From positions 248,001 through 312,000 of the IMG/VR virus record IMGVR_UViG_3300044644_001125: a DNA stretch of 64,000 nucleotides; one strand, given 5' to 3'. A program made the translations under genes and the position numbers. Numbering within the stretch: the stretch's first letter is position 1; every line of letters starts with the position of its first letter. The notes under the pieces were generated by a model that saw only the letters and a list, made by a program, of their open reading frames with translations, was not told the DNA's origin and ran no database searches. This document shows, one piece after another, positions 3,250 through 38,200 of the stretch.

Positions 3250-4713
3250 ATGAAAGACATTTTAGATAAACTCGATGCAATCGAAACACCAGTAGCTGGT
3301 GTAGCAGCACCCACATTACCATCACCAATTCAATTGGATGAAAGTGCACAATTACGTGTACTAGCAGGCCAATCTTCACTTCTTACTGAAGCAGCTAAGG
3401 TAAAGAAACCAAAAGCTAAGAAAGAAGAAAAAGTCGAAGAACAACAAGTTGAAAGTTTAGATGATGAAATGGAAGAAGATTTGGAAGAATCTGCAGAACA
3501 AGCAGCTGCACGTGCTAAATTTGAAAACTTAGTTACTAAAGTTGCACCTACGTCTAAATCTGGTTCTGCAACCGATGCAATGAAAGCACAGACTGGTAAA
3601 GATAAAAAACCAGTAGGTAAAGGTGGTGCAGCATTCAAAAAAGAACTCGATAAAGAATTGAAAACCGAAGATTCTAAACCAAGTGCTGGTTTAACTAAAA
3701 AAGAGAAATCTGCAGTAGTTAAGAAAGCAGTTGCCGGTAAAGATATTGGAAAAAAAGGTAAAGGCTTTGAGAAAGTTGAAAAAGCAGCAGCAAAAAGTGG
3801 AGCTAAAGACCCTAAAGCAGTTGCAGCAGCCGCTATGTGGAAAGGCCAAGCTAAAAAGAAAGCAGTTAAGGAATCAATCGAACCTAAACTAACTTTCAAA
3901 CAAATGGTCACTTTAGTTCAAGAAAGCGGTGGTCAACAACAAATCGATGCGGTTGATACTGAATTGTTTGCATGGGCACAACGTGTTGCTAGTGCCAAAT
4001 ACGAAGGTGTTAAACAAGAACTTTATGCCGGTATGGTATACGAAAACATGGGTGGTGAATTCCGTATGTTTGACGTATTATCGGAAGCAATGACCGGACA
4101 CCCTGATACTTGGTCAGATCCACGTTGGGATGGTCCAGATCCAGCAGAAGCACCTGTTTCACACAAGGCGTTGGAGTACTTCAATGATAATTTCTATGAA
4201 ATCGCATGGCCAAGTGTTGCAGAAGAACTCAAAGCTATGATTGAAAACGACGAAAGTGGCGATATCATGTGGCCAATTGTTGCTATTGGTAAATCCAAAT
4301 ATGGAAATGAAAAGGTCAACACCGCTGCCGAGCTTGGTAAAATTAAAAATGCAATTTTAAACATGCTCGACGAAAAAACAATCAACGACATATACGACAA
4401 TGCAATTTCTAAATTTTGGAGTAAGCATAATACCGACCCCAGTTTTCAAGATAAGAATGACGAGAGTTTTGAAGAATCATTCGACGAAGAATTCGAAGAA
4501 GCATTTGGTAAACATCAAGCTAAACAAAACTGGTTTGAAACGCTAAACGCAGCATTAGAATCAGAAGGTTTGGTTGACCAATGGCCAACTGGTCGTAATA
4601 TTTCATATGGTCAAACTGTACGTGTAAAATCAAATGATGGTGAACGTCTTATTTCAGTAACTCGTGAAACAGACGGCCGTTATGAACGACCAGTTCACTA
4701 CAAACTTCGTTAA
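3250..4713 (+). CDS. Probable internal head/core protein with multiple (I/L)-X-E processing-like sites
   Basis: AAGGA RBS; MKDILDKLDAIE leader; LDE-S, LTE-A, VKE-S, LSE-A sites; alternating acidic and K/A-rich tracts. Confidence 0.65.
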   Translation: MKDILDKLDAIETPVAGVAAPTLPSPIQLDESAQLRVLAGQSSLLTEAAKVKKPKAKKEEKVEEQQVESLDDEMEEDLEESAEQAAARAKFENLVTKVAPTSKSGSATDAMKAQTGKDKKPVGKGGAAFKKELDKELKTEDSKPSAGLTKKEKSAVVKKAVAGKDIGKKGKGFEKVEKAAAKSGAKDPKAVAAAAMWKGQAKKKAVKESIEPKLTFKQMVTLVQESGGQQQIDAVDTELFAWAQRVASAKYEGVKQELYAGMVYENMGGEFRMFDVLSEAMTGHPDTWSDPRWDGPDPAEAPVSHKALEYFNDNFYEIAWPSVAEELKAMIENDESGDIMWPIVAIGKSKYGNEKVNTAAELGKIKNAILNMLDEKTINDIYDNAISKFWSKHNTDPSFQDKNDESFEESFDEEFEEAFGKHQAKQNWFETLNAALESEGLVDQWPTGRNISYGQTVRVKSNDGERLISVTRETDGRYERPVHYKLR

Positions 4714-4736
4714 TCCTAAAAGATAATGAACACAAG

Positions 4737-4760
4737 AAGCCAGTCTAGTACTGGCTTTTT
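4737..4760 (+). terminator. Intrinsic terminator
   Basis: AAGCCAGT-ctagt-ACTGGCTT followed by a T run. Confidence 0.75.
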
Positions 4761-4775
4761 AAATTGGAGACCTAT

Positions 4776-4880
4776 ATGAGAATTCACGAAATACTAGAAA
4801 ACACAACCAAACAATTTCCAATTCCATGGAACTCGGCATGGAAGCCGAGTGACCCCCTAGGACGGGTTGCGACGCGCTAG
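4776..4880 (+). pseudogene. 5' fragment of a fourth leader-bearing ART-like gene
   Basis: GGAG RBS and ATG 4776 give MRIHEILENTTKQFPI..., stop at 4878-4880; FHGT (ttc cat gga act, 4822-4833) lies in a shifted frame. Confidence 0.55.
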
Positions 4881-6340
4881 CGGAGCAGAGGACGCGAGGG
4901 TCATTTAATTGACATGAGCGGCAACCGTCTTACCTGTTATTATACAGACATAGCTTACAAAGACAACTTCAATTTAACTAAATAGAGATATGAGCACATC
5001 TACTAAAATCACTGGATACAAAACGAAATGCCTGTTAAATCAGGAGCAGATCGCTTTGTTCGATAAATCAGTGGATGGTTGTGTATTTGCATATAACGAA
5101 TTTCTTGCATTGGTGAACGCCGAATATGCCATAACTGGTAAGATTTCTACCAAATGCTGTAGTGTCAAAGAATTAAGAAATAACAACCCGTGGTTAAAAG
5201 AGCTATCTAGTAGAGTAATCGATGGATCTCGTCTTAATCTATTGGATGCATTTAGCCGGTTCTTTAGTAAGCAAAATGACTTCCCAGTATTTAAAAACCG
5301 GTATAGTAAGAAATCACTAAGACATGCCGGCGATTGTTACTTGTACATGAAAAATGGGTATATGTACGCAGTTATTCCAAAAATTGGTCATGTGAAGCTA
5401 TTGACTGATTTCTCGGATTCAGCTAATCAATTTGATTATACAACTGTTACTGGGATAACCTTATCCCAAGATAGTCTTGGAAACTTTTATGTCTCATTTC
5501 ATGCGAAATCGACTACTGCTCATTTACCAAAGACCCATAAATCAGTTGGTATAGACCCAGGTCTTACTACTTTTGCGACCTTGAGCACTGGTAAAAAGAT
5601 CAAGAATCCAAGATTTCGTGAAAGAACAGAAAACCGAATGAAAGCGCTTCAGCGTAAACTCGCGAAATGTACCAAGAACTCAATAAGATATAACAAATAT
5701 AAGAAACAAATAGCTGCACTTCATCAGAAATCGGCAAATCAATTAAATGACTTCCATAAAAAGACATCAACTAAAATAACCAAAGGCTACGACAACATCT
5801 ATATTGAGGAAACTCAGACCAAAAACATGATGTCTCGTGGTAAGAAAAAAACAAAAAGCCCTAGACGCCTAGGGAAATCATTCGCTCAAGCCGGAATCAG
5901 TGCATTCCGTGAAATCTTGATAAGAAAGGCGGAGCTTGTTGGTAAAAAGGTTCATCTTGTACCAGCTCGCAATACAACAAAAACATGCAGTAGTTGTGGT
6001 CACATCCACAACGATTTAACTCTTAAAGATCGGTCATGGACTTGCCCCGTATGCGGTATTGAACATGACCGAGACATAAATGCTGCCCGTAATATATTAC
6101 AAAAAGGGCAAGCTAATCGGTTTACCGGAGGTGGACTTGTTGCACAGGGCAACAATACCGGGTTACCTAATCAAAAAAGGACGCAGCAAAGCGGGTTAAC
6201 TCCCGTTAGCAAAAGTACCAGTTCAGCTACTAGCAGTACCAGTAGCCTACCTGTTATTTAAACGTCTATTCACGGTTTATCCCGTGAACCGAGGACACGA
6301 CGTCCGAAGTTCTCAGGGATGCCGCGAAATACCGACGGTT
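4831..6340 (+). mobile_element. Non-autonomous tnpB-only element (IS200/IS605- or IS607-related); ends approximate
   Basis: GC-rich hairpins on both sides of tnpB (ACTCGGC/GCCGAGT 4831-4850; TTCACGG/CCGTGAA 6269-6288); lies between two fragments of an ART-like gene; no tnpA adjacent. Confidence 0.65.
4990..6261 (+). CDS. tnpB: RNA-guided endonuclease TnpB
   Basis: RuvC-I VGIDPG, RuvC-II IYIEE, zinc finger CSSC..CPVC, RuvC-III DRDINAARNI; N-terminal HTH-like region. Confidence 0.93.
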   Translation: MSTSTKITGYKTKCLLNQEQIALFDKSVDGCVFAYNEFLALVNAEYAITGKISTKCCSVKELRNNNPWLKELSSRVIDGSRLNLLDAFSRFFSKQNDFPVFKNRYSKKSLRHAGDCYLYMKNGYMYAVIPKIGHVKLLTDFSDSANQFDYTTVTGITLSQDSLGNFYVSFHAKSTTAHLPKTHKSVGIDPGLTTFATLSTGKKIKNPRFRERTENRMKALQRKLAKCTKNSIRYNKYKKQIAALHQKSANQLNDFHKKTSTKITKGYDNIYIEETQTKNMMSRGKKKTKSPRRLGKSFAQAGISAFREILIRKAELVGKKVHLVPARNTTKTCSSCGHIHNDLTLKDRSWTCPVCGIEHDRDINAARNILQKGQANRFTGGGLVAQGNNTGLPNQKRTQQSGLTPVSKSTSSATSSTSSLPVI

Positions 6341-6360
6341 TCTGCCACCTATGCTGGTGC
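6120..6360 (+). ncRNA. Putative TnpB omega-RNA (scaffold plus guide running into the flanking gene); boundaries uncertain
   Basis: Low-complexity C-terminal tail of tnpB followed by GC-rich hairpins (6269-6288; GGAC-acgac-GTCC); this is the expected position for TnpB guide RNAs. Confidence 0.45.
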
Positions 6361-6706
6361 CGAACCAAGCGCAACCGGTGAAATTACCCATTTCAAACAA
6401 TGTGGTAATGTGATGCCACTATTAATCAAACCCGGAAAATCAATGGTTGTCGATGCGAAAGGTGCTAACTGGAATGACATTTACATCAAAAAATATCCTA
6501 TCTTGGAAACAACCAACGATTTCGCGGAATATGCCCAATCAAATGGCAAGGATACTTTGTATATCAAAAACGTAAGAGATAATAAGACTTGGCAGAAAGA
6601 TAAACTTCCTAGCACGGTTGTATTTGCATTTCACCCATCTTATATAAGATCAATTAATGCAAAATTCGACCCAGCCAATCACGAAGATGAAGATTTAATG
6701 GCATGA
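6332..6706 (+). pseudogene. 3' fragment of the interrupted ART-like gene
   Basis: PTVSATYA..GNVMPLLIK..DTLYIKNVRD..VFAFHPSYIRSINAKFDP matches the C-terminal half of the ART-like family; no good RBS or start codon. Confidence 0.6.
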
Positions 6707-6769
6707 TATTATCAACTGTGTTATACTACATTCTCAGAATAACAGTCAATTACCACGAGGAGAAATAAG

Positions 6770-7033
6770 ATGAACACGATTGAATTGTTTTTAGCAGACT
6801 TGGAAAAGCTATGCGAGACGCACAATATCCAATTAATGTCCCCACCAAGTATAGCACCATTAGGAAACTCACAACGTAACTATTTGACATACCCGGGTGG
6901 TATAATGTCGGAGATGTTTGTACAACAGCAGCAAGTGGATATTACCATAAATCTACGAGCAATGCTAGAAGGTAATGTCCATCACGAGACAGACAACCGA
7001 CGTATTCACCCAGCTTTGAAGCATGACTATTAA
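6770..7033 (+). CDS. Hypothetical protein
   Basis: GAGGAG RBS; upstream extended -10 TGTTATACT at 6719. Confidence 0.65.
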   Translation: MNTIELFLADLEKLCETHNIQLMSPPSIAPLGNSQRNYLTYPGGIMSEMFVQQQQVDITINLRAMLEGNVHHETDNRRIHPALKHDY

Positions 7034-7118
7034 TCCCTAGTCATAGTACTGGCTTTTTAGTTTTTACTATGTTATACTGCATTCTCAGTTGGTAGTTTCA
7101 AGTATCTAAAAATAACAC

Positions 7119-7147
7119 TTGACAACTACCAACCACTCACCTACAAT
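7119..7147 (+). promoter_or_regulatory. Sigma70-type promoter
   Basis: TTGACA-17-TACAAT. Confidence 0.75.
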
Positions 7148-7176
7148 ACTAATTTTAACCACAACGAGAGAATCAA

Positions 7177-7434
7177 ATGTCAAAAATCTACGGACCTGAA
7201 GAAAAAGCAAAATTAGAACGTTTAATCAATGAAGGTTCTAACGTACTACGTGAAGTTGAAGACCTTTCAATGGGTCTTAAAGATACTGTAAAAGCAGTAG
7301 CTGAAGAACTTCAAATCAAACCTTCTATTATCAACAAAGCCATCAAGATTGCTCACAAAGGCAATTGGTCTACCTTTAATGAAGACTGGGAAGAAGTTGA
7401 AGCTATTCTTGATATCACTAAACGTTTAGATTAA
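7177..7434 (+). CDS. T4 DsbA-like double-stranded DNA-binding protein
   Basis: 85-aa helical protein with LKDTVKAVAEELQIKPSIINKAIKIAHK, the pattern of the DsbA/GapR-like family. Confidence 0.6.
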   Translation: MSKIYGPEEKAKLERLINEGSNVLREVEDLSMGLKDTVKAVAEELQIKPSIINKAIKIAHKGNWSTFNEDWEEVEAILDITKRLD

Positions 7435-7442
7435 TCTAGCAT

Positions 7443-7467
7443 GAGCAGCCTACGGGCTGCTCTTTTT
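7443..7467 (+). terminator. Intrinsic terminator
   Basis: GAGCAGCC-tacg-GGCTGCTC-TTTTT. Confidence 0.85.
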
Positions 7468-7502
7468 GTAATAGTTAATTTTGGGTCTAAATATTAGTTT
7501 AC

Positions 7503-7590
7503 GCTAGCACCTTGCTCGTACCTCACTCGTACATTACTCGTACATTGCTCGTACCTTGCTCGTGCATTGCGAGCACCGATAGGTGCGAGC
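7503..7590 (+). repeat. Six tandem 11-bp units (consensus RCTCGTACMTT) ending in a GCGA-GCACC-GATA-GGTGC-GAGC hairpin
   Basis: Units start at 7503, 7514, 7525, 7536, 7547 and 7558; hairpin at 7569-7590. Confidence 0.85.
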
Positions 7591-7612
7591 TTAACTGATA
7601 TTAGGATTTAAA

Positions 7613-7855
7613 ATGGCTAAAATAATCGAACAAAGTGACAAACTAGGTAGACCAGTAGTAGCAGGTAACTTCGTGGCATTCGCACATCACAACGACTTAC
7701 GAGTTGGTGTGGTAACCAAGGTATGCCCAAAACTAATCATGATAACAGAAATAGACAGAGAACGTAATAGGCATTATCGTAAGTATCAGTTTGACTTAAT
7801 CGTAATGGAAGAAAATCCACTGGTAACTATGTATTGCCTAAAACACGGCAAATAA
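7613..7855 (+). CDS. Hypothetical protein (possible SH3/KOW-like fold)
   Basis: AGGA RBS; DKLGRPVVAGNFVAF..VGVVTKV. Confidence 0.6.
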   Translation: MAKIIEQSDKLGRPVVAGNFVAFAHHNDLRVGVVTKVCPKLIMITEIDRERNRHYRKYQFDLIVMEENPLVTMYCLKHGK

Positions 7856-7934
7856 GTTATAATCAAAAAGGTTTACGACCGCCATAAGTGTCGGATTATA
7901 CGGTAAGATTGGCCATAAACAATCAGGAGTTTAA

Positions 7935-10106
7935 ATGAGTTATGTAGATGCTTTTTATGAAAAAGATCGCGATATTATCCACGTAGTTGAACGTGATACA
8001 GATGGCATTCGCCATTACCGAGAATTTCCAGCAAACTATGTCTTTTATTACGAAGACCCAAATGGTAACCATCATTCAATGAAAGGTAAACCATTGTCTA
8101 GGGTTAAAAGTAAAACCCACAAAGAACATCATAAGAATATTGCTATATTTGGTCAAACCAAGAAGTTATATGAAAGTGATATCAATGTTACCTATCGTTG
8201 CCTTGAAGACCATTACCTTAACGCAGATGCACCTAAACTCAATGTCGCGTATTTCGATATCGAGACCAGTATGTGTCCTGATCGTGGGTATGCCGCACCA
8301 GACGATCCTTTTATGCCAATTGTTTCTATTGCTGTATATCTTCAGTGGTCTGAAACTATGATTTGTTTGGCAATTCCACCAAAACATATGAGTATAAAAG
8401 AAGCTGAAGAGCAAGTAGCTGAGTTTGAGAACACGTTTATCTTTAAAACAGAAAAGGAATTATTAGATACATTCCTTACTATTATCGAAGATGCTGATGT
8501 ATTAAGTGGTTGGAATTCTGAATCATTCGATATTCCATATACCGTTAATCGAGTTGCTAAGGTTTTAAGCAAAAACGATACTCGTCGATTCTGTTTATGG
8601 GATCAATCTCCTAAGAAACGTGAATTCGAGAAGTTTGGTAAGGTTTCGACTACTTTCGATTTGGTTGGTCGAGTTCATATGGATTACTTGGACATTTATC
8701 GCAAGTATACCCATGAAGAAAAGCCATCTTATCGATTGGATGCTATTGCTGAATATGAATTAGGTGACCATAAAACTCCGTATGATGGTACATTAGAACA
8801 GCTATACAATCAAGACTTTAAGACTTTTATCGAATATAACCGACAAGACGTTGCACTGTTAGATAGAATGGATAAGAAGTTGAAGTTTATGGATTTGGCT
8901 AATACGACTGCTCATGGTTGTACTGTATTGTTACCAACTACGTTAGGTTCCGTTGCAGCTATTGAACAAGCTATTATCAATGAGGCGCATAGTAAAGGGC
9001 AGATTGCACCTAATAGAAAGCCACGTAATGATAATGAAAACACGCAAGCTGCTGGTGCGTATGTTGCTTATCCCAAAAAAGGTCTACATGATTGGGTTGC
9101 TTCATTAGATATCAACTCGCTGTATCCTAGTACGATTCGTGCACTTAACATGAGTCCAGAGACTATCATCGGACAGTTAAGACCAGTGGCAACTGATAAG
9201 TTTATTGCAGATCAAATGGCTACAGGTAAGAAGTTTGCTTCATGCTGGGAAGGTGTATTTTCGACTTTAGAATATGATGATGTTATGTCAAGAGATTCAA
9301 ATCGTATGCTTACTATCGATTGGGAAGAAGGTAGCAGTGATGAACTTAGTGCTGCTCAAACCTACGATTTAATTTTCAAATCTGGTCAATCATGGATGTT
9401 AAGTGCAAATGGTACTATCTTTACTTTTGAAAAAGAGGGAATTGTACCTGGGCTATTGAAAAAGTGGTACGCTGATAGGCAAGGTATGCAAGCGAAAATG
9501 AAAATTGCACGCGATGCCGGACTCGACATCGAAGAACGATACTGGAGTATTAAGGAGCAATTTTGTAAATTATTGCTAAATAGTTTATACGGTGCTTTGC
9601 TCAATAGCGGTTGCAGGTTTTTTGATAAACGTATTGGCCAAAGTACAACGTTGACTGGTAGGTCTATCACTAGACACATGACAGCTCAGGTTAATGAAAT
9701 TGTATGCGGTGAATATAATTATCTAGGAAAATCAATACTTTACAATGACACGGATTCGCTAGAATCTGGATCTATCATTCGAACAACGAGTGGAGATTTG
9801 ACTATCGAAGAATTGTTCGATCGTGGTAATTTGAAATGGAATTCTGGTGATAAAGAATATTCACGCGATGATGATATACGAGTAATACACTGCGATGGGA
9901 CTGACAACTTGTCATATACCAATTATAATTATGTTTATCGACATAAAGTGTCTAAAAGACGATTTAAAATTATGACAGCGAATGGAAAAACGGTAACAGT
10001 AACCGAAGATCATAGTGTTATGATCAAAACGGATACTGGATATATTGAAAAGAAACCGATGGATATTAAACCAGGTGATGTGGTAATGACTATTAATACA
10101 GTATGA
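7935..10106 (+). CDS. DNA polymerase family B (gp43-like), N-terminal part fused to the split intein N-half
   Basis: Exo I FDIET, Exo II GWNSESFD, Exo III YNRQD; motif A DINSLYPS; motif B KLLLNSLYG; motif C YNDTD then intein sequence. Confidence 0.95.
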   Translation: MSYVDAFYEKDRDIIHVVERDTDGIRHYREFPANYVFYYEDPNGNHHSMKGKPLSRVKSKTHKEHHKNIAIFGQTKKLYESDINVTYRCLEDHYLNADAPKLNVAYFDIETSMCPDRGYAAPDDPFMPIVSIAVYLQWSETMICLAIPPKHMSIKEAEEQVAEFENTFIFKTEKELLDTFLTIIEDADVLSGWNSESFDIPYTVNRVAKVLSKNDTRRFCLWDQSPKKREFEKFGKVSTTFDLVGRVHMDYLDIYRKYTHEEKPSYRLDAIAEYELGDHKTPYDGTLEQLYNQDFKTFIEYNRQDVALLDRMDKKLKFMDLANTTAHGCTVLLPTTLGSVAAIEQAIINEAHSKGQIAPNRKPRNDNENTQAAGAYVAYPKKGLHDWVASLDINSLYPSTIRALNMSPETIIGQLRPVATDKFIADQMATGKKFASCWEGVFSTLEYDDVMSRDSNRMLTIDWEEGSSDELSAAQTYDLIFKSGQSWMLSANGTIFTFEKEGIVPGLLKKWYADRQGMQAKMKIARDAGLDIEERYWSIKEQFCKLLLNSLYGALLNSGCRFFDKRIGQSTTLTGRSITRHMTAQVNEIVCGEYNYLGKSILYNDTDSLESGSIIRTTSGDLTIEELFDRGNLKWNSGDKEYSRDDDIRVIHCDGTDNLSYTNYNYVYRHKVSKRRFKIMTANGKTVTVTEDHSVMIKTDTGYIEKKPMDIKPGDVVMTINTV
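9756..10103 (+). other. Split intein N-fragment (116 aa, Ser1)
   Basis: Starts SLESGSIIRT..LTIEELF immediately after YNDTD; block B VTEDHSV; ends KKPMDIKPGDVV then a stop. Confidence 0.9.
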
Positions 10107-10113
10107 GGAGATA

Positions 10114-11844
10114 ATGATGAATGAATTGGAAGAACGTAATTTAACAGTACTAACATTTAAAAAGAAGTACCCACGGCAGTACAAGTACTTGCTTGAATAT
10201 TACGGCGGGGTTCGTGTATTTGACAAAGCAGCGGCGGTGTGTTTATATTTACGAGGGGCTAAACCTCCGACATGCTCTATTTGTGGGAAATTACTTGCGG
10301 TTGATAAATGGTCTAGGAATTCGTCATATTCGCCAAGGTGTAATACTCACTCGAAAACTAACCCTGATACTATAGTAACTCGTGAGATATTAGAGGAAAA
10401 TAACCCACATGGGTATACTATTGTTGACGTGCCACTATATGCGTCACCATCGACCTATATAAAACTACACTGCCATAATCATGGTGATTTTTCACAACCA
10501 GCGTCTAATTTCCTTAAAGGTATGCGGTGTAATAAGTGCTATGATCGTAGTACTGAAATTCCAGTAAAAGTCGATTATAATACTTGGTTGGAGCGTAGTA
10601 TTGGACATTTTGGTGATTTTTATGATTATTCAAAAGTCAGTTTTACAAGAGTGGAACAGGATATGATAACAATAGGATGCCCAGATCATGGAGATTATGA
10701 GCAACGTGCATCGACTCATATGCGCGGCCATGGTTGCCCAAAATGTGCAAACGCATTGAGTAGTACAAATCTAACTCGATCGACTGCAGAATTTATCAGG
10801 TTGGCAAATATCAAGCATTCTGGAAAATACCAATACCCGAATACAATATATAATGGTTCTCGTTCTATTGTGGAAATTGAATGCCCGATACACGGGCCAT
10901 TTAATCAAGTCGCGTATTACCATCTTGCTGGGAATGCGTGTCAGCAGTGTGGTTATGAGATATCAACAAGCAGGTCCGCTGCAGAAAAAGAATTGGTTGC
11001 GTGGTTGGAAGATACGGGTATTTCTAACGTAACCCACTCTAATAGGATTTTCAGTTACGAGTTAGACGTTTATCTACCAGATTATAACATTGCAATCGAA
11101 TATAATGGATTGCATTGGCATTCTTCCAATAGTAAAGATTTAGATTGGAAATATAAATCTGCACACTTGTACAAGACCACTGAGTGTGAAAGTCGAGGTA
11201 TTCAACTATTTCATATCAACGAATCAGAATGGGGATTGAATGCAACGAAAAAGGAAATATGGAAATCGATTATACTTGAAAACCTACAGGTCGCACCAAC
11301 GATATTAAAGATTACTGACTGCGATATCATAATTGTGGATTCTAGCACCGCAATCGAGTTCATGGAAGAGAATCATATTTATGGTTACTTTCCTGGATCA
11401 TCGCATATTGGTTTAGAACGTGATGGTGTACTGGTTGCATTAGCCACCTTTGCCAAATCTAATGATAGAAATGCGAAACCAAATACGTATGAACTGGTAA
11501 GGTATGCCACCCTAATATACACAAGCATACCATCCGCGTTTAGTGTAATACTTTCGCATTTCACACAGGATAAGACTGGTGCATTAATTGCATATGCTGA
11601 TCGTAGATTCGATAACGGTGCTTTATTTGAATCCAATGGGTTCGTGTTAGATTCAATTGAAAAACCAACATATCAATATATCAAAGGTCAAAAAACGTAC
11701 CATCGTTGCAAATTCACCAAATCAATTGCGGAAAATACATTACCAATATTTGACAAAAGCAAAACTTTGGTTGAAAATATGTATGATAACAAATACCGCA
11801 GAATGTGGGATTGTGGCCAATTGATTTATATTTTACAATTTTAG
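10114..11844 (+). CDS. Free-standing homing endonuclease-like protein (zinc-ribbon repeats, Vsr/DUF559-like PD-(D/E)XK domain, C-terminal GNAT-like domain)
   Basis: Own GAGGAG RBS; three CxxHG...CxxC repeats; ELDVYLPDYNIAIEYNGLHWHS..GIQLFHINESEW; C-terminal YELVRYA..AYADRRF..WDCG. Confidence 0.85.
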   Translation: MMNELEERNLTVLTFKKKYPRQYKYLLEYYGGVRVFDKAAAVCLYLRGAKPPTCSICGKLLAVDKWSRNSSYSPRCNTHSKTNPDTIVTREILEENNPHGYTIVDVPLYASPSTYIKLHCHNHGDFSQPASNFLKGMRCNKCYDRSTEIPVKVDYNTWLERSIGHFGDFYDYSKVSFTRVEQDMITIGCPDHGDYEQRASTHMRGHGCPKCANALSSTNLTRSTAEFIRLANIKHSGKYQYPNTIYNGSRSIVEIECPIHGPFNQVAYYHLAGNACQQCGYEISTSRSAAEKELVAWLEDTGISNVTHSNRIFSYELDVYLPDYNIAIEYNGLHWHSSNSKDLDWKYKSAHLYKTTECESRGIQLFHINESEWGLNATKKEIWKSIILENLQVAPTILKITDCDIIIVDSSTAIEFMEENHIYGYFPGSSHIGLERDGVLVALATFAKSNDRNAKPNTYELVRYATLIYTSIPSAFSVILSHFTQDKTGALIAYADRRFDNGALFESNGFVLDSIEKPTYQYIKGQKTYHRCKFTKSIAENTLPIFDKSKTLVENMYDNKYRRMWDCGQLIYILQF

Positions 11845-11850
11845 GAGTTT

Positions 11851-11988
11851 ATGATGCAATTTGTTTCAGAATTATCAACGGTGACATTCGTTGAGGAGTT
11901 ATCACCGTTTGATGACGAATACGTATACGACATTGGAGTTAACGCAACAGATCCATGGTTTTTTGGTAACGATATACTAGTTCATAAT
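11851..11988 (+). other. Split intein C-fragment (46 aa), terminal His-Asn, +1 Ser
   Basis: Block F VYDIGV and block G ILVHN followed by S. Confidence 0.92.
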
Positions 11989-12837
11989 TCAGTATATTTC
12001 TCTGCGTATGAAACACTTAAACCAGATATCGAAGCTGGTTTGATTCCATGGGATAAAGAATCAATCATTCAGTTTTATGATGCAATTGGTGAAGAAGTTA
12101 ACGAGACTTTCCCTAAATTCATGTCCACTGCGTTTCATTGCCCTAAAGCACGTGGTTCTGTTATTAAGGCTGGTCGTGAGATTATTGGGTCTAAAGCGCT
12201 ATTCATTACTAAGAAACGGTACGCGGTTCTTTACTTCGACAAGGAAGGTAAACGTACAGATATTGATGGTAAGCCTGGAAAAGTAAAAGCTATGGGTTTG
12301 GACTTAAGACGATCCGACACCCCACCTCCCATTCAAGACTTTTTAAGTAATGTATTGGATATGGTTCTTAATGGCAAACCACAAGAGGATACAATCAAGT
12401 ACATTACCGAATTCAGACAAGAATTCAAGAAATGGAATGGTTGGGAAAAAGGTTCACCAAAACGAGCTAATAACATTACCAAGTATGGTACACTATTAAC
12501 CGATAAAGGCAAAGCAACGATACCAGGTCAAGTCAGAGCTAGTATCAATTGGAATACTTTAAAACGCATGAATAGTGACAAATATACTATGTCTATTATC
12601 GATGGATCAAAAGTGGTAGTTTGTACACTCAAAGATAACCCGATGGGATTCAAGAGCGTAGCGTACCCAGTTGATGAACAAAGATTACCTCAATGGTTCA
12701 AAGAACTCCCATTTGATGAAGCCATTATGGAAGAAAAGTTAATTGATGATAAGTTGGACAACTTGATTGGCGTACTCAACTGGGATTTGAGTGAAACCCG
12801 TCAGAATAACTTCTTTAATTCGTTGTTTTCGTTTTAA
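11851..12837 (+). CDS. Split intein C-half fused to the DNA polymerase B C-terminal part (palm/thumb)
   Basis: AGGAG RBS; YVYDIGV..FFGNDILVHN|SVYF; KKRYA; KAMGLDLRRSDTP. Confidence 0.95.
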   Translation: MMQFVSELSTVTFVEELSPFDDEYVYDIGVNATDPWFFGNDILVHNSVYFSAYETLKPDIEAGLIPWDKESIIQFYDAIGEEVNETFPKFMSTAFHCPKARGSVIKAGREIIGSKALFITKKRYAVLYFDKEGKRTDIDGKPGKVKAMGLDLRRSDTPPPIQDFLSNVLDMVLNGKPQEDTIKYITEFRQEFKKWNGWEKGSPKRANNITKYGTLLTDKGKATIPGQVRASINWNTLKRMNSDKYTMSIIDGSKVVVCTLKDNPMGFKSVAYPVDEQRLPQWFKELPFDEAIMEEKLIDDKLDNLIGVLNWDLSETRQNNFFNSLFSF

Positions 12838-12840
12838 GTA

Positions 12841-12870
12841 TTGACATATTGCGGTTAGTTGTAATATACT
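12841..12870 (+). promoter_or_regulatory. Sigma70-type promoter overlapped by an inverted repeat
   Basis: TTGACA-18-TATACT; ATTGCGGTTAGT/ACTGACCGCAAT arms span the spacer and the -10 box. Confidence 0.65.
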
Positions 12871-12888
12871 GACCGCAATTTAAACAAA

Positions 12889-12910
12889 GCTCGTGCCTAT
12901 CGGCACTCGC
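12889..12910 (-). repeat. GCGA-GTGCC-GATA-GGCAC-GAGC hairpin (copy of the 7569 element on the opposite strand)
   Basis: Reverse complement of gctcgtgcctatcggcactcgc; compensatory stem changes relative to 7569-7590. Confidence 0.8.
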
Positions 12911-12933
12911 AATAACCAATAAAGGAAAATAGT

Positions 12934-13257
12934 ATGCTGAAACGTGAGGATGTAAAACTTACCATTGAGATGGCACCAAAGCAATACGAAAAAGAATTAG
13001 CATGGGATACTGGTATGATGTACTGTTTTTCATTAGATATTAATGGAAAAACTGGTTGGAGATTACCTACTATATCAGATGTACGAGATTTATGGTTCCA
13101 ATATGATGCTTCCGAAATAGATGGAATCTACTGGACAAATCAAACCACACCAGGTGAAGATTTCGCATGGGCTGTTGATTCTGACGGTATAGATGCTACT
13201 GGATATGATAAGTGTATGGCTAAACTCATGGTTAGACCAGTACGAGATATCACTTGA
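12934..13257 (+). CDS. Short DUF1566/Lcl-like (CLec-fold) protein, paralog of the 60588-61473 genes
   Basis: EMAPK..YCFSLDINGKTGWRLPT..YWT..AW..VRPVRD. Confidence 0.75.
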   Translation: MLKREDVKLTIEMAPKQYEKELAWDTGMMYCFSLDINGKTGWRLPTISDVRDLWFQYDASEIDGIYWTNQTTPGEDFAWAVDSDGIDATGYDKCMAKLMVRPVRDIT

Positions 13258-13282
13258 CAACCCATTCACAAACCATTAAACT
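13254..13282 (+). promoter_or_regulatory. Sigma70-type promoter
   Basis: TTGACA-17-TAAACT. Confidence 0.6.
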
Positions 13283-13348
13283 ACACAAAGCAGTACCAGA
13301 TTCCACTTATATGTGGATTATTTTAACTTCAAACCTCGAGATTATATT

Positions 13349-14089
13349 ATGATTAAAGATACTCTACAAGACATCGTAGCACACACACATTCATTAGGTA
13401 TTTTACCAACAGTAAAAGTAACTGGAACACCAACATCAACTTCTATTGAATCTATTGCCGAAGATAAATCGGTTATTTTGCAGGCTGAAGTACATAAGCC
13501 AGTTGCAGAATTTGAAGGTGTATTTGGTTTACCTAACTTAGATAAGTTAAACATCCATTTAAAATGTCCAGAATACCGTGAAGACGGAAAAATTGAAGTT
13601 GTACGTGAAGTACGTGACGGAGTTGAAGTTCCGACTTCCCTACATTTTGAAAATGCAGCAGGTGACTTTTCAAATGACTACCGTTTTATGAGTACTGCGG
13701 TTATTAACGAAAAGATCAAGAATGCTATTTTCAATGGTGCACAGTGGAAGATTTCATTTGAACCGACTATTGCAAGTATTACGCGTTTGAAGTATCAAAG
13801 TACGGCTCATTCACAAGAACCAGTTCTGGAAATAAGTACAAAGAACAATAACTTAATCGTTAGTTTTGGTGATGCATCTACGCATGCTGGTAGTTTTATA
13901 TTCCATACAGTTACTGCTACTGAATCCTTAAAATATACTTGGTCTTGGCCAGTACATCAAATCATTCAGATTCTTGGATTAGCTGGTACTAAAACCATGA
14001 ACATTTCTGATGTTGGTGCGATGCAAATTATAGTTGATAGTGGTATTGCTGTATATAAGTACATCTTACCTGCATTATCTAGTAAGTAA
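13349..14089 (+). CDS. DNA polymerase sliding clamp (gp45-like)
   Basis: About 246 aa, two-domain alpha/beta pattern ending YKYILPA; located just downstream of polB; likely start at ATG 13349. Confidence 0.65.
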   Translation: MIKDTLQDIVAHTHSLGILPTVKVTGTPTSTSIESIAEDKSVILQAEVHKPVAEFEGVFGLPNLDKLNIHLKCPEYREDGKIEVVREVRDGVEVPTSLHFENAAGDFSNDYRFMSTAVINEKIKNAIFNGAQWKISFEPTIASITRLKYQSTAHSQEPVLEISTKNNNLIVSFGDASTHAGSFIFHTVTATESLKYTWSWPVHQIIQILGLAGTKTMNISDVGAMQIIVDSGIAVYKYILPALSSK

Positions 14090-32217: not shown

Positions 32218-35200
32218 TTAGCCTATCATCGCGGTGGTTTTTTGCGATATAAACTTAGCCATTGGTGTATTATTTTCCAATAACGTAATACCAGCACTTG
32301 CCGCCGTTGCAGTTTGTTCATACCAAACTTTACCAACCTTTCTATAAACAACGACGTTAACACTTGCATTAACCGGTATACTATCAAGTACCGAATCAGT
32401 CAGCCTGATGTAGTTGGAAGTACCATCGACCGAGAATTCAGCATCTAACAATTCATCAGCACGTGGGCTAGTAGAACCTAATGATTCATTGAATACATGC
32501 ATTGGATTTTTACGCAATCTTCTTCCGCCCACAAATACTTCAACCTGATCGCATGGACCATATCCAGTAGGTATATTACCAGCAGCCCAATTAGTTCTAA
32601 CAGATTTAACTGGAATATAACTCAATGGTCCAACCGATCTAGTAGAACCATCAATCATGAATGATTCTTTCATCTCAGTTTCGTTGTATGGGATTCGTTC
32701 TTGTATACTTACATCAGCAACATCAGTTCCTGCAGTATATAACTCTGCAATTGCAGTTCCCATACTACCACGTCTTAACTGTGATAATGTATTGTCAGTA
32801 AGCATCAAATACTCGATACGTTCGCCGTTAATCAATACAGTACCAGGTTGATTTCTTGCAGCAACAGGAATAGATAGCAGTGAGGCGTCAGTTACTAAAA
32901 TCTCAGTATCATAGTAGTTCAAATCTTTAGCCAATTGGATAGTTCCAATTGAATATCTGTTATATCTAAAGACATTTAGCATATCTTTTGATATTTCATA
33001 TGATTTGGTACTGCACAATTTCGATCCAAATAATACAACTTTAACCATATCAGATTCACTAGTGGTGTCTAGTAGATATACTTTTGTTTTATCATCGGAT
33101 AGATAATAATCACGGATTGGTGTTAATTTAACGCCGTTCACATAAACCCAAACATAACTTGAATCAATTGGCTTCATTGCTAATGCGTAACTAGCTTTTC
33201 CACCAACATGCTCATCTGTCAATAATTGCATAGTTTGGTATTGTGTAAACCAGACAACATTAACCACATCGTTCGTAGTCAGTTCACTACTGATAATCAA
33301 CGTATTTCCGTTAATGCTATACTCGGCATTTGAATTGTTTTCTATTAATACCACGTCATTAATAACCAATGAGTCAATAGTAACCAGTGTCATTTCTTCA
33401 TTGAAAACGTAATCGACCAAGAATGATTTTAAAACACCATTGACATATACTTTAATATTACTAGGTGTTGCATAACCACTTCCTAGTTCAATTTTGAATT
33501 GTGCAGTTGAGCCAGTATAAACACCGTAGGTTGTATCAACACCAGTCAACGCGCTACCATTAACATTCACAATCATTGGCGTATATTGATGGTTGGTTGG
33601 TTCTACTGCAAACATTGACAAGGTGAATTCTGGGTTATCGGTATAAATGAAGGTTTGTTCATTAATTCTTGCGATTGACGTATCAAAATCAACATTTGCA
33701 TTTGCACCAAAGCACACAACCTTAACATCGTCAGACACGGTAGGCATTGGGTTTACTGTAACTTCCGTTTTACCAGTTATTTTCTTGCCTGTTGTACTAC
33801 CAAAACTTGCGTCAGTGCTAATACCATTAACAGTTACATAAACTGATGTGGTATCTTTAAACTTAGCATTTGTTGCAAATTTGGCTGATTTACCATCAGC
33901 AACGAACGATTTTGAATCGAGAATTGCAACACCACCAACCCCAATCGCCGTGATTTCAATGATAGCACCAGCCGTAACCGGTAATACAAACTTAACTGTA
34001 TTGTTAGTTAGATTAATGGTATAGTGCGTGTCAATTGACTTCTTAACCTTATTCACCGTCACAATAACCGATGAGAATTCGATGATAGGTAAACCAATAC
34101 TATAGGTTGTTGTAATACCATCACTGATAAACACTGTTGAATGCAGTGGGGTTGAACCAGTTGATTTAGTATCAAATACTTTAATACTTAAACTATCAAG
34201 TACTTGACCTGGTACGTTTTCTTCAGTTGCTGATACATTCTCTGGACTTATAAATTTACCACCTTCAATTATAATTTCCTCAGCCTTCAAACCAGTTGCA
34301 GTTGTATACGCGTTGTTCAATCTCTCCAACGAACCACCACTCATATTGGTATCCACGATATTTGGGTCATTAATAACCAATGAACCATCGCTTTCTTCAG
34401 GTCTAAAGATTAACGTATCGCCTTGTATCGTGTCAAAATATGAACCAATATCAATAGTTGCCGACACGCCATCACCGATAAATGTTGGCATTTGTGCATA
34501 TGGATTGATTGTACTAGTTGAATCCCATTGCGATGTATATGCAATATCATCCAATCTAATAACTGATGGCATTGACCCATCATACAAGGTGTATGCCGTT
34601 GATTTCAATCCATACTGTTTAACAGATTTCCATGATTCACGTTTAACATAGATATTAATGTGTTGACCAGCTACTGGAACAAATGGCAAAGTGACGGTTG
34701 TTGCTATTACTGGATTCGCAATACCATCACAAACATAATAGTAATCACTACTTTGTTCAACACTATCCCAATTATCAGTGAACCAAGGTTGTGAATCCCA
34801 ACCACCAGTCACATCAAATGTAGTTCCTTGAACTTGAACTCCACCAAAATCCACACCTGTTATTAACTGAGATAATTGATTACCTTTCATACCTGACATT
34901 GGTTGGTAGTATTTCGATATACGGTTAACACTATCAAGTAAACTATCGTGTTTTTCGTAATTTACAACAATAACATCACCAACTATTGGATTGTTATTGA
35001 ATATAATCATACCAGAAGTAGCTATATTAGCATTACCAGCCGGTATTACCAATTCAACCGTATATTCGCTACTAAGAATCAATTTATCATTGATATAAAC
35101 AGTGATTCTATTTTTTTCATTTAGTGGAGCATACATCAAATTGAAAACTGATGTATAACCAGTCGCAATAAATGTTTCAGTATTATACAGCGATTGATAT

Positions 35201-38200
35201 AATCCAGTTTTTGAAATTCTATCAAACTTCATTGCTACATTAAATAGTCTGACCTTACTATCACCAATTACTGCGATAGCCGAAGCACTTTTTGATCCGG
35301 GTGTATTACCACCAATCAATTCAACTGTTGGTGCTTCTTTATAGCCAATTCCAGCATTTTCAATGATAATATTAGATACCACGCCATTTGATATGTAGGC
35401 TTTTGCAGTGGCACCTACACCAGTTCCTGTTATCACAACAGATGGTGGTTGATTGTAGTTTTCACCACCAGATGCTAAAATTATTTGTTTAACCGTAAAC
35501 GTATTGTTATCAGTCCACCACTTCCATGGATATTGATTTAAAGTATACCAATCATAGATGGTTACCGGTTTATTGGAACCGCCGGTATATGCAACTGGTA
35601 AGTCAAAATCACCAATAGCAATAGACGATTCTTCAGTTGTATCATACTTACTAATATACTCACGAATAGTTGATCGATAGGGTTTAACCTCTTCGATGTA
35701 ACTTTGGAAACTTTGCAAACTATCGTTTTTATAATTCAATGGTTGTTCAAAAGGTCCAACATTATGAACTGCTGTTAAGAAACTGGTTTTAAAAGCCCAA
35801 TCAACATATAACTGTTCCGCAAAAACTGCGCGAACACAAGTGAAGAATAGATTACCCCATTCAGTGGCATTATTACCAATGCAAATATCATGTTTTACTG
35901 CCCGTAAGATATTACGGAGTTCTAAACTAGAATCCATATCATAGCTAATAGAATCAAACGCAGCAGAACTATCATAACCAACTCCAGAGGTAACATCATC
36001 ATACAATTTTGTAGATAATTGAATTGTTCCGTTTTCTCTACCAACCATAGTATAGAAATCAGAGAAAATACCGGCATCTACTGGAACTGCGATGCACTCG
36101 AAGGTTGCCCAACCACCAGATTCGAACTCTTTTATTCTAATCAGATCGCCAATTACTGGATTAATTGTCTTAATTGATACGATTGCTGTGATTTCATTGG
36201 TTACTTTTGAAGAACTATTATAACCAGTTGCCCACCAATCAACGTATGACCAGTATTTGGTAGTATCATATGCTTGCGCTGAACTTCTAACAAATTGTTT
36301 ACTTACTGAATCCCACGCATATATACTCCAATAACCACTAATAGTAGAATCAGAATTAACTAATACAGAATATGGTCTTACTGTCGCGGTTGCATTGCTG
36401 TATTTTTTACCACTACTAATAATATTAGCCTGGATTGCACTACCATTTTTATCAATAATCAGTTGAACAACCGCACCAGTTCCATCACCAGATACGGTCA
36501 CTAATGGTCCTTGATACCCAACCCCTTGATAATTATACGCAGGTATACTGATACTTTCATACACTGGTACGTTTGGTTTATAGCCGTATCCTTGTTTTAC
36601 GATATTAACTGCTGTTACTTTACCATTAGTTAATTCCACACCCAACTCGGCTTGAGTTACTCGAGTAATACCAACATTTTGTAAATCCTGATAGGTATCG
36701 ACTGTTGTATCGTAGTAGTTTAACTCAACGATCGGTGCTTGATCTACCAAATTAAGGTTACTAAAGTTCATGTTACCAGTAAACGGTTCAGTAGTTAAGA
36801 TTGAATTTACATTAGTAATTACCATTTTAAGGGCAGGTAATCTATCAATAAACATACTTTGGCGTGGTCTAAAACTAACACCATATTTCAATTTAGTTGG
36901 TAGTGTATTATCTGGTACTCTATTACCAACAACATCTCTACCAATTACACTATCAATCCACTTTGCTTCTAATTCGTTAGATAATTCAAATGATTCGCTA
37001 CCTTCAGACAATAACTGATATTCGTTATGAACTGGCACTTGATTATATGAATCTTTGAAATATTCAATATTAACCAATGCAGTTTCTGTTGTTAGTACCG
37101 AACCAAAGTTATAAGCTAACATTGCAGCAGGTGAACATAAACCAACAAACGCAATACCAGTACCAATTGGGTTATCAATCGCATTTGCAACATCCAATGC
37201 TGATAAATTTCTACCAATCACAGCATCTGGTATTAATGCCGTGTTTTTAACCCAGTAGTAATACTGCGTTCCAGTGACTACACCAGTTACTGAATTATAC
37301 AACTCTTTAACAACCATAACGGAATCATCTGAGTACAACGGCTGCCCAGAAATACCAGAAGCTAATCCTTCCGTTGTATCTGCCAATGATGCCCATTCTG
37401 AAGGTAATATTGTAGTTTTAACCCATTCATAAACATCGACCGTTGAACCAGTAACTTGAACATTCCAATGGCCTGTCCGATAAGTTAAATCATCTTGTTC
37501 AGCATACATCCATTTTGATTTAGAAATATCCCACCAAAGTGTCCCAACATTCTTATCTGCCCATGCTTGTGATGGTTCTATGATTTGAGTTTCATCATTG
37601 GTACCAATAGAATAGACCGCTGGGTCATACATTGTTTTAAACGTGATTTCCTGTTCAGCAATATTCAATACTTTTAACTTTGAATTATCAACGTAATCAA
37701 CATCTTGAATTTTCAAACTGTTAACATTGTCATATAATGAAATGCTTTTAACATTGCGAGTATCGACTACTTGTTGTTGAGATGCAATTATATCCCAAGC
37801 ACCATTAGAATTGGTATTCGTGAACATACGCAAACATCCCACTAATGTGTCACTAGTCGGTAATGTGTAAGTTGGTGAACCAACAAATATTGATGAATCA
37901 GTGCATGCTAAACTTCCACCAAATGATTCATAAGGACGTAATGTAGGTTTTAATTCTGAAGTTAGTAGGTATTGGTCGCCTTTCTTTTCGAATACATAAA
38001 CTGCACCGGCATATCCACGTTCACTATAGAATGTAGTTCTACCACCATCAAAAGTAGCATTGAATGAATCATAAGTTACATAGTCAGTATTTTTCGCACT
38101 AATTACTATTCTATTGTCACTAATAGCAACACTACTACCAAATTGTTCATTGGTGATATATTCAAAACTTTCAATAGTTTGTGATAATACATACTGAGAA

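Follow-up and report, generated by a model that had tools for sequence, protein, structure and literature searches.

How does a phage obtain a working replicative polymerase when the gene for it is broken inside the catalytic motif C, with a stop codon on one side of the break and another gene in between? The question is raised by a 64,000-nucleotide stretch of DNA (hereafter the window; positions 248,001 to 312,000 of IMG/VR virus record IMGVR_UViG_3300044644_001125), in which three consecutive plus-strand open reading frames (ORFs), ORF A, ORF B and ORF C, occupy positions 7935-12837. We read this locus as the 'fractured' family-B DNA polymerase (PolB) gene of a 327-kb freshwater jumbo phage, in which the halves of a putative trans-splicing intein flank the break and a putative homing endonuclease gene lies between them, and we put the probability of this reading as a whole at roughly 87%. 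The locus is present in > 20 lake and other aquatic metagenome runs from many studies. Relatives are given L-numbers, whether they derive from metagenomes or phages (e.g. L002 is Salicola phage SCTP-2 and L019 is Aeromonas phage Aes508), and metagenome runs are given X-numbers. The parts of the locus are listed below with their lengths in nucleotides (nt) or amino acids (aa), the intein halves being abbreviated IntN (N-terminal) and IntC (C-terminal); the coordinates and sequences that an initial annotation had assigned to the three parts all proved correct when re-read from the sequence.

7925-7929, plus strand: AGGAG ribosome-binding site of ORF A, read from the sequence, 5 nt ahead of the ATG at 7935
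7935-10106, plus strand: ORF A, 723 aa, PolB N-extein and IntN
7935-9755, plus strand: PolB N-extein, 607 aa, comprising the exonuclease domain as well as motifs A, B and the first part of motif C (to YNDTD)
9756-10103, plus strand: predicted IntN, 116 aa, beginning SLESGSII, with Ser1, R62-H63 and T83..H86
10104-10106, plus strand: TGA stop codon of ORF A, read from the sequence (overlap with the AGGAG of ORF B, 10104-10110)
10114-11844, plus strand: ORF B, 576 aa, predicted free-standing homing endonuclease of the Hef-type, EDxHD/Vsr-like kind; the start is possibly the second ATG at 10117
10471-10950, plus strand: three zinc-ribbon repeats of the endonuclease, DUF723/treble-clef type, with columns invariant in alignment A4
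10975-11238, plus strand: nuclease core of the endonuclease, with conserved E316, D318, E329, N331, W335 and H336
11296-11841, plus strand: GNAT/Mom-like C-terminal domain of the endonuclease, from an AlphaFold2 (AF2) model, Foldseek and profile matches
11842-11847, plus strand: TAG stop codon of ORF B overlapping the AGGAG of ORF C, read from the sequence
11851-12837, plus strand: ORF C, 328 aa, IntC and PolB C-extein
11851-11988, plus strand: predicted IntC, 46 aa (45 if the start is the second ATG at 11854), ending ILVHN
11989-12837, plus strand: PolB C-extein, 282 aa plus stop, beginning with Ser+1 (SVYF) and containing the KKRYA motif

The three genes are closely packed, with only 7 nt between ORF A and ORF B and 6 nt between ORF B and ORF C. 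Each ORF opens with a double ATG preceded at 3-6 nt by AGGAG, including ORF C, for which the initial annotation had claimed a ribosome-binding site of its own, and both internal AGGAG sites overlap the preceding stop codon. With a mini-intein in motif C and an endonuclease gene at the position that an endonuclease usually takes in an intein, the locus would therefore yield three proteins, all from the same strand and with starts closely coupled to one another. No plus-strand terminator-like site was found from 7462 to 13302, and no Rfam family (e.g. group I intron) matched in 4500-13500. The frames of ORF A and ORF B differ, while ORF B and ORF C share a frame and are separated by a single TAG. 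This common frame (11842-11853) recurs in L005 and in the Pseudomonas phage PA5oct and is missing from Aes508; it is probably a coincidence.

That both ends of the locus encode parts of one polymerase is evident from their domains. The N half matches the Pfam families DNA_pol_B_exo1 (PF03104, E 5e-21) and DNA_pol_B (PF00136, E 4.5e-23) and carries DINSLYPS, KLLLNSLYG and YNDTD, and the C half matches DNA_pol_B and carries KKRYA, as in family-B polymerases of the T4 gp43 type; the C-extein aligns with the C-terminal region of RB69 gp43 and is taken as the thumb. In the close relative L007, PolB is a single unbroken gene of 889 aa, equal to 607 + 282 of the joined exteins, and the junctions are therefore exact. 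The two are collinear codon for codon and 94% identical in amino acids, the C-extein corresponding to L007 residues 608-889, and the junction reads YNDTD/SVYF in the window against YGDTDSSYF in L007. Alignment to YGDTDS of RB69 gp43 places the break between the equivalents of D623 and S624, so that in motif C the polymerase breaks off after the second Asp and resumes at the Ser, and the expectation of the initial annotation that joining the exteins would restore this motif is borne out by both L007 and RB69 gp43. PolB is also unbroken in ten further relatives at ~60% identity, and it is broken at the same residue in L003, L005 and L006. Among cultured phages the nearest PolB is that of PA5oct/MIJ3 (48% identity over the N half); a megablast search of the locus against 50,697 phage records gave no match to near-identical DNA, and the nearest cultured relatives are recognisable at the protein level only.

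Two further features of the polymerase sequence deserve mention. At the position of the Gly in YGDTDS (9741-9743), the window and L003 have Asn and L005 and L006 have Ser, and the Gly is kept in 11/11 intein-free relatives; the substitution in intein-bearing alleles may be an adaptation of the -4 extein residue, or may mark an imported block. In addition, the window, L005 and L007 agree at 95-99% over the first ~225 nt of polB (7935-8160), even though L005 is otherwise ~80% identical, which points to further mosaic recombination inside the gene.

The segments that flank the break have the hallmarks of an intein. IntN matches residues 2-118 of PDB 9hth_A (E 6e-10) and IntC matches residues 136-170 (E 0.004, SVY of the C-extein included), so that the two fall on consecutive parts of one structure, an Aes-type PolB intein in whose crystal Ala replaces residue 1 and the terminal Asn. 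Other solved inteins (TFIIB, RadA, VMA, PolC) also match IntN, solved inteins besides 9hth giving matches at E 2e-5 to 0.04, and a PolB16 match is weak and confined to IntC (E 0.07). Designed 'Bagel' repeat proteins, the top match of IntC in PDB, were discarded as they contained no individually significant stretch. The initial annotation had described an IntN of 116 aa with a TEDH block B and an IntC of 46 aa ending ILVHN, and both are present in that form, each with its catalytic residues. In an alignment of the window IntN with those of PA5oct, Aes508, PTm1, CP21, SCTP-2 and L005 (A3), Ser1, which directly follows YNDTD, is invariant; block B is T83-E-D-H86, with VT.DHS invariant across 7 relatives; and the His of R62-H63, in YVYRHK, is invariant and preceded by R or K in every row. 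Such an [RK]-H 'NX' motif upstream of block B is a signature of Ser1/Ser(Thr)+1 inteins (Pasch 2023). IntC supplies D27 of block F (in VYDIGV) and H45-N46 of block G, followed by Ser+1. The sole Cys of the intein lies at the non-catalytic position 46 of IntN, where L005 also has it and PA5oct, Aes508, PTm1 and CP21 do not; IntC contains none. Charges counted from the sequence are likewise segregated, with a net -6 over IntN residues 1-55, +5 over residues 56-116, and -9 over IntC, which has no Lys or Arg, as is expected for 'capture and collapse' assembly (PMC11923092). Identity to any intein in the phage collection is at most 44% (SCTP-2 IntN being closest), relatives at ~75% occur in metagenomes, and the catalytic residues are kept in relatives down to ~30% identity. 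These features support the assignment of the element, by its sequence, as a putative naturally split Ser1/Ser+1 class-1 intein flanking the PolB break.

The window comes from a metagenome assembly, which speaks for possible error in the two stop codons. The three-ORF layout and its stops are kept in L003 (92% nt identity) and L005 (~80%), and L006 (~75% nt) keeps the N half, IntN and the ORF A stop before its contig ends. In four independent aquatic metagenome runs, both stops are covered by contigs that show no indel, among them contigs of X2, X4 and X6 that span the two sites; X2 is possibly the same sample as the source. Stops that are kept in diverged relatives and spanned without indels by independent contigs are genuine. 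Ratios of non-synonymous to synonymous substitution (dN/dS), calculated between the window and L003, L005 and L006, were 0.10-0.15 for IntN, 0.19-0.21 for ORF B and 0.01-0.09 for the exteins, and 0.11 for IntC (against L005), ratios against L005 and L006 being rough because synonymous sites are saturated. The intein and the endonuclease are thus under purifying selection, and the exteins strongly so. It is extremely improbable that the stops are sequencing or assembly errors, or that the locus is a decaying pseudogene in a phage that relies on another replicative polymerase. The ORF boundaries are shared by L003 and L005, and the ORF A stop by L006, at 75-92% nt identity and in other samples; contigs from other studies cross the stops in the same way; the low extein ratios are at odds with decay; and removing the stop between ORF A and ORF B, which lie in different frames, would not yield one reading frame.

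The gene between the halves resembles known homing endonucleases. ORF B matches the homing-endonuclease families phrog_559 (E 4e-95) and phrog_3339 (E 3e-81), is 38% identical to the 'Hef-like homing endonuclease' found in the same position in PA5oct, and has 505 homologues at E <= 1e-10, in agreement with the fractured genes, with an endonuclease between the halves, that the initial annotation had cited as precedent. In an alignment of 52 endonuclease sequences (A4), the zinc-ribbon ligands are invariant (C120 H123 C139 C142; C189 H192 C208 C211; C257 H260 C276 C279), and the Pfam families DUF723 and DUF4379 match relatives. The profile of A4 matches PDB 3r3p, the catalytic domain of I-Bth0305I (E 2.1e-7), for which the 52-sequence profile was needed, a single-sequence phmmer search of ORF B against PDB giving a chance match only. 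D318, E329, N331 and H336 correspond in the alignment to D196, the conserved Glu, N208 and H213 of I-Bth0305I, and D318 and H336 fall on the positions mutated in the crystal (D196A and H213A); for the last motif residue the correspondence is doubtful, the D222 position of I-Bth0305I aligning with a conserved His (H351) in the ORF B subfamily. Similarity of the nuclease core to the Vsr-like endonucleases of Aes508 (E 3e-4, probability 39%) and PTm1 (E 1e-3, probability 20%) was weak by hhalign, and pairwise BLASTP of ORF B against these two enzymes gave no significant match. Hef-type enzymes have already been assigned to the EDxHD/Vsr-like family (PMC3239194), and ORF B is, as judged from its sequence, a probable Hef-type member of this EDxHD (Vsr-like) family.

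The last 180 aa of ORF B have a GNAT fold in an AF2 model (predicted local distance difference test score 90.9), with Mom of phage Mu, a protein that modifies DNA, as the best PDB match by Foldseek (8bv8, E 2e-6). The ORF B profile matches the GNAT structures 2bsw and 2fia, and Pfam Mom matches relatives weakly. Within the Foldseek top 50 for the whole ORF B model, the nuclease core was absent and the GNAT/Mom-like domain alone was recovered; as modelled, this domain may serve in DNA binding, or else may bind acyl-CoA or have a catalytic role. The endonucleases inside the fractured PolB genes of Aes508, PTm1 and L022 are shorter, and share the nuclease core alone. Neither the intein nor the endonuclease has a paralogue within the window.

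From these parts we infer how the polymerase would be completed and how the element would spread. The basic second lobe of IntN and the acidic IntC would associate after translation into one HINT domain, and class-1 trans-splicing would proceed via oxyesters, with an N-O shift at Ser1, transesterification to Ser+1, cyclisation of Asn46 and an O-N shift, to give a polymerase of 889 aa in which motif C is whole. The endonuclease would cut intein-free alleles in co-infecting relatives, upon which the block of IntN, endonuclease and IntC would spread by recombination. Splicing itself, the dependence of replication on it, as proposed in the initial annotation, and the target of the endonuclease are all predicted from sequence; in favour of splicing, we count that the PolB inteins Aes123 PolB1, CP21 PolB1 and LCGC14 PolB2 trans-splice in vitro.

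Intein-free and intein-bearing alleles can be found side by side. In run X3, a contig of depth 12.2 (~4.3 for insert-bearing contigs) links position 9757 to 12021 by 30 nt that match L007 exactly, and intein-free and insert-bearing contigs are likewise mixed in run X2. Along the joined gene, the window and L007 are 95-99% identical at the ends and 63-79% in a stretch that begins ~900 nt upstream of the junction and ends 200 nt past it, and across this divergent block the window and L003 are 92-98% identical. Such a block fits the pattern expected of recombination accompanying gain or loss of the element. An L005-like donor of the block was considered and rejected, as the window is no closer to L005 there.

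Several points weigh against our reading of the locus. The Pfam model Intein_splicing (PF14890) reaches 29.9 bits with IntN (E 5.9e-7) and 13.8 bits with IntC, against a gathering cut-off of 35.8 bits, so that of the alignments to intein models and known split PolB inteins, those to 9hth were significant and that to Pfam fell short. Identity to the proven Aes123 intein is ~36%, and in vitro splicing is poor for some natural split inteins of the family, Aes being ~30% efficient (PMC11923092) and CP21 and GOM-OPS-1 prone to aggregation (PMC12707363). The inspected part covers 64 kb out of 327 kb, and another replicative polymerase could be encoded elsewhere in the genome. Finally, the recombination pattern around the junction fits gain in the window lineage and loss in L007 alike.

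The half-inteins could have lost splicing and serve as a high-affinity dimerisation module only, leaving the polymerase as a non-covalent enzyme of two chains. Assembly of this kind has been documented for phage genes fractured by endonucleases (Aeh1 NrdA, and T4-like gp43A/B splits that lack inteins), and gene 43 of Aes508 is additionally split by a GIY-YIG endonuclease gene at an intein-free site. We nevertheless regard loss of splicing as very unlikely, for the residues retained are those of the chemistry and not merely of association (Ser1, R-H, T..H, Asp, H-N and Ser+1), dN/dS of ~0.1 is seen in both IntN and IntC, homologues at the same site do splice, and without splicing a 162-residue domain would stay right after the catalytic DTD of motif C. 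A fused product could also arise by recoding, either by read-through of the TAG, giving an endonuclease-IntC-C-extein protein, or by frameshifting, giving an intein with a nested endonuclease. In the window, as in L005 and PA5oct, a single TAG and 6 nt separate ORF C from ORF B in the same frame, which would allow the former; frame sharing is, however, expected one time in three, the frames differ in Aes508, and an AGGAG and an ATG are present for each ORF. Passage from ORF A to ORF B would require a +1 shift, for which neither a slippery or structured signal was noticed nor an Rfam match obtained, and the endonuclease family is known as free-standing. Recoding is therefore very improbable, and a fractured PolB joined by protein trans-splicing remains our preferred reading.

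The same arrangement recurs in at least 85 protein clusters of metagenomes, and the three-gene fractured PolB layout is kept in L003, L005, PA5oct, Aes508, PTm1 and L022. A search with ORF C, from which full-size polymerases were excluded by length, returned 2,902 clusters at E <= 1e-10; among the best 120, which were examined, 84-85 carry IntC at the start, 42-43 of them ending HN/S as in the window and 41-43 ending HN/TDS. The HN/TDS class can be split as well: in L022 (4602-6981), the N half ends YGD/SVTGD... and a Vsr-like endonuclease lies between the halves. The contiguous intein of SCTP-2 is in this same register. The two registers, DTD^S (Ser+1) and YGD^TDS (Thr+1), are thus offset by two residues in motif C; each is found in naturally split form, and an IntC tree separates them with one change, at a modest support of 76.

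Several known systems share parts of this design. The well-studied fractured-gene inteins gp41-1, NrdJ-1 and IMPDH-1 use Cys1. Fractured genes, with an N half and IntN, a free-standing endonuclease ORF, and IntC with the C half on one strand, were defined together with the Vsr-like endonuclease family in 2009 (Dassa et al., PMC2677866), and the window has the same plan. Closest in organization are the Pseudomonas jumbo phages vB_PaeM_MIJ3/PA5oct, whose split PolB intein and endonuclease were described in 2019 (Imam et al., PMC6892783): these share with the window the PolB host gene, the DTD^S insertion, Ser1/Ser+1, the three-gene order with a Hef-like endonuclease and the jumbo-phage setting. 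They differ in that the intein is ~36% identical, IntC of PA5oct has an N-terminal extension of ~35-40 aa, PA5oct has YGDTD where the window has YNDTD, and they are phages of clinical Pseudomonas whereas the window is from an uncultured lake phage.

T4-like Aeromonas phages carry Aes123 PolB1, a Ser-dependent intein that is split in nature (120 + 39 aa) and from which CL and CLm have been engineered (Humberg 2025, PMC11923092). It resembles the window element in being naturally split, in its Ser1/Ser+1 pair and NX [RK]-H motif, in the DTD^SVY site of a gp43-type PolB, in the split at the endonuclease position (120 + 39 vs 116 + 46 aa in the window), and in the Vsr-like endonuclease gene between the halves. 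Its intein, however, is ~36% identical, and the Aes endonuclease has 353 aa and lacks both the zinc-ribbon repeats and the GNAT/Mom-like domain. Gene 43 of Aes508 (L019 1033-6355) differs further in having, as annotated, three interruptions: a GIY-YIG endonuclease gene without an intein, a group I intron, and a split intein with a Vsr-like endonuclease gene. CP21 PolB1, LCGC14 PolB2 and GOM-OPS-1 PolB2, each with a single dispensable IntN Cys (C43, C24 and C57, respectively), were tested in vitro in 2025 (PMC12707363); like the window element they are phage or metagenomic PolB split inteins with an IntN of 115-120 aa, an IntC of 42-46 aa and one IntN Cys (C46 in the window). Identity to CP21 is ~34% over IntN, LCGC14 and GOM-OPS-1 were compared by description, and the window intein, unlike these, is known from sequence alone. 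I-Bth0305I (PMC3239194, PDB 3r3p) has the Vsr-like EDxHD core in common with ORF B and is, in contrast, intron-encoded with NUMOD DNA-binding repeats, where the window endonuclease has zinc ribbons and a GNAT/Mom-like domain. SCTP-2, which has the closest IntN in the phage collection (44%), shares the same motif C and differs in that its intein is contiguous, lacks an endonuclease and sits two residues upstream (YGD^TDS, Thr+1).

With the Aes123/CL/CLm, CP21 and LCGC14 tools and the MIJ3/PA5oct layout already published, we count the window element among known kinds: it is a new, fairly divergent intein of an already described kind, and its arrangement, chemistry, endonuclease family and jumbo-phage layout have all been reported before. 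The initial annotation had suggested a new, nearly cysteine-less trans-splicing tool, of which the Ser1/Ser+1 pair and the single internal Cys of IntN stand and the novelty was overstated, such inteins having already been characterised and engineered. No concept is changed by the finding. Efficient cysteine-less split inteins are nonetheless scarce, with two mutually orthogonal efficient ones counted in the 2025 literature, and the window Ser1/Ser+1 pair, with one removable Cys, together with dozens of relatives, offers reasonable candidates for protein engineering. For phage biology, the locus would represent an essential replication enzyme completed only after translation, if our reading is true, and a selfish endonuclease gene inside a selfish intein. 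Moreover, both allele forms, with and without the intein, can be recovered from the same lakes together with the scar left by recombination. More tentatively, and at odds that we consider somewhat worse than even, the block of IntN, endonuclease and IntC may be homing now as one unit in the lake population, both alleles being present in the same samples and a divergence block being centred on the site, in which case these lakes would be a field system to watch a fractured gene spread. On this reading, the two registers in motif C would mean that a split intein can shift its insertion point and +1 nucleophile while function is kept, and the window intein, ~36% identical to Aes123, could splice efficiently in trans without Cys and be orthogonal to CLm and LCGC14.

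The surroundings of the locus are of phage type, the neighbouring genes including those for tail-fibre-like proteins, a baseplate hub, an SbcC-like protein and a 5'-3' exonuclease; no tRNA genes were found within the window. Upstream of polB, a 2.28-kb segment (4762-7039) is missing from L007 (region 3962-5867). This segment carries a TnpB-like gene (4990-6261, with Pfam OrfB_IS605 and a Cas12f1-like TNB match) and three small ORFs, and is flanked by a duplicated hairpin/T-run sequence of ~16 nt (4746-4761 and 7044-7058). Its L007 counterpart, a minus-strand pair of ORFs of 432 and 204 aa just upstream of polB, may be another transposable element. Further along the window, an ORF of 4,529 aa on the minus strand (32218-45807), with FG-GAP and CBM5/12 matches, belongs to a run of large genes of virion or tail-fibre-like type (20036-53771).

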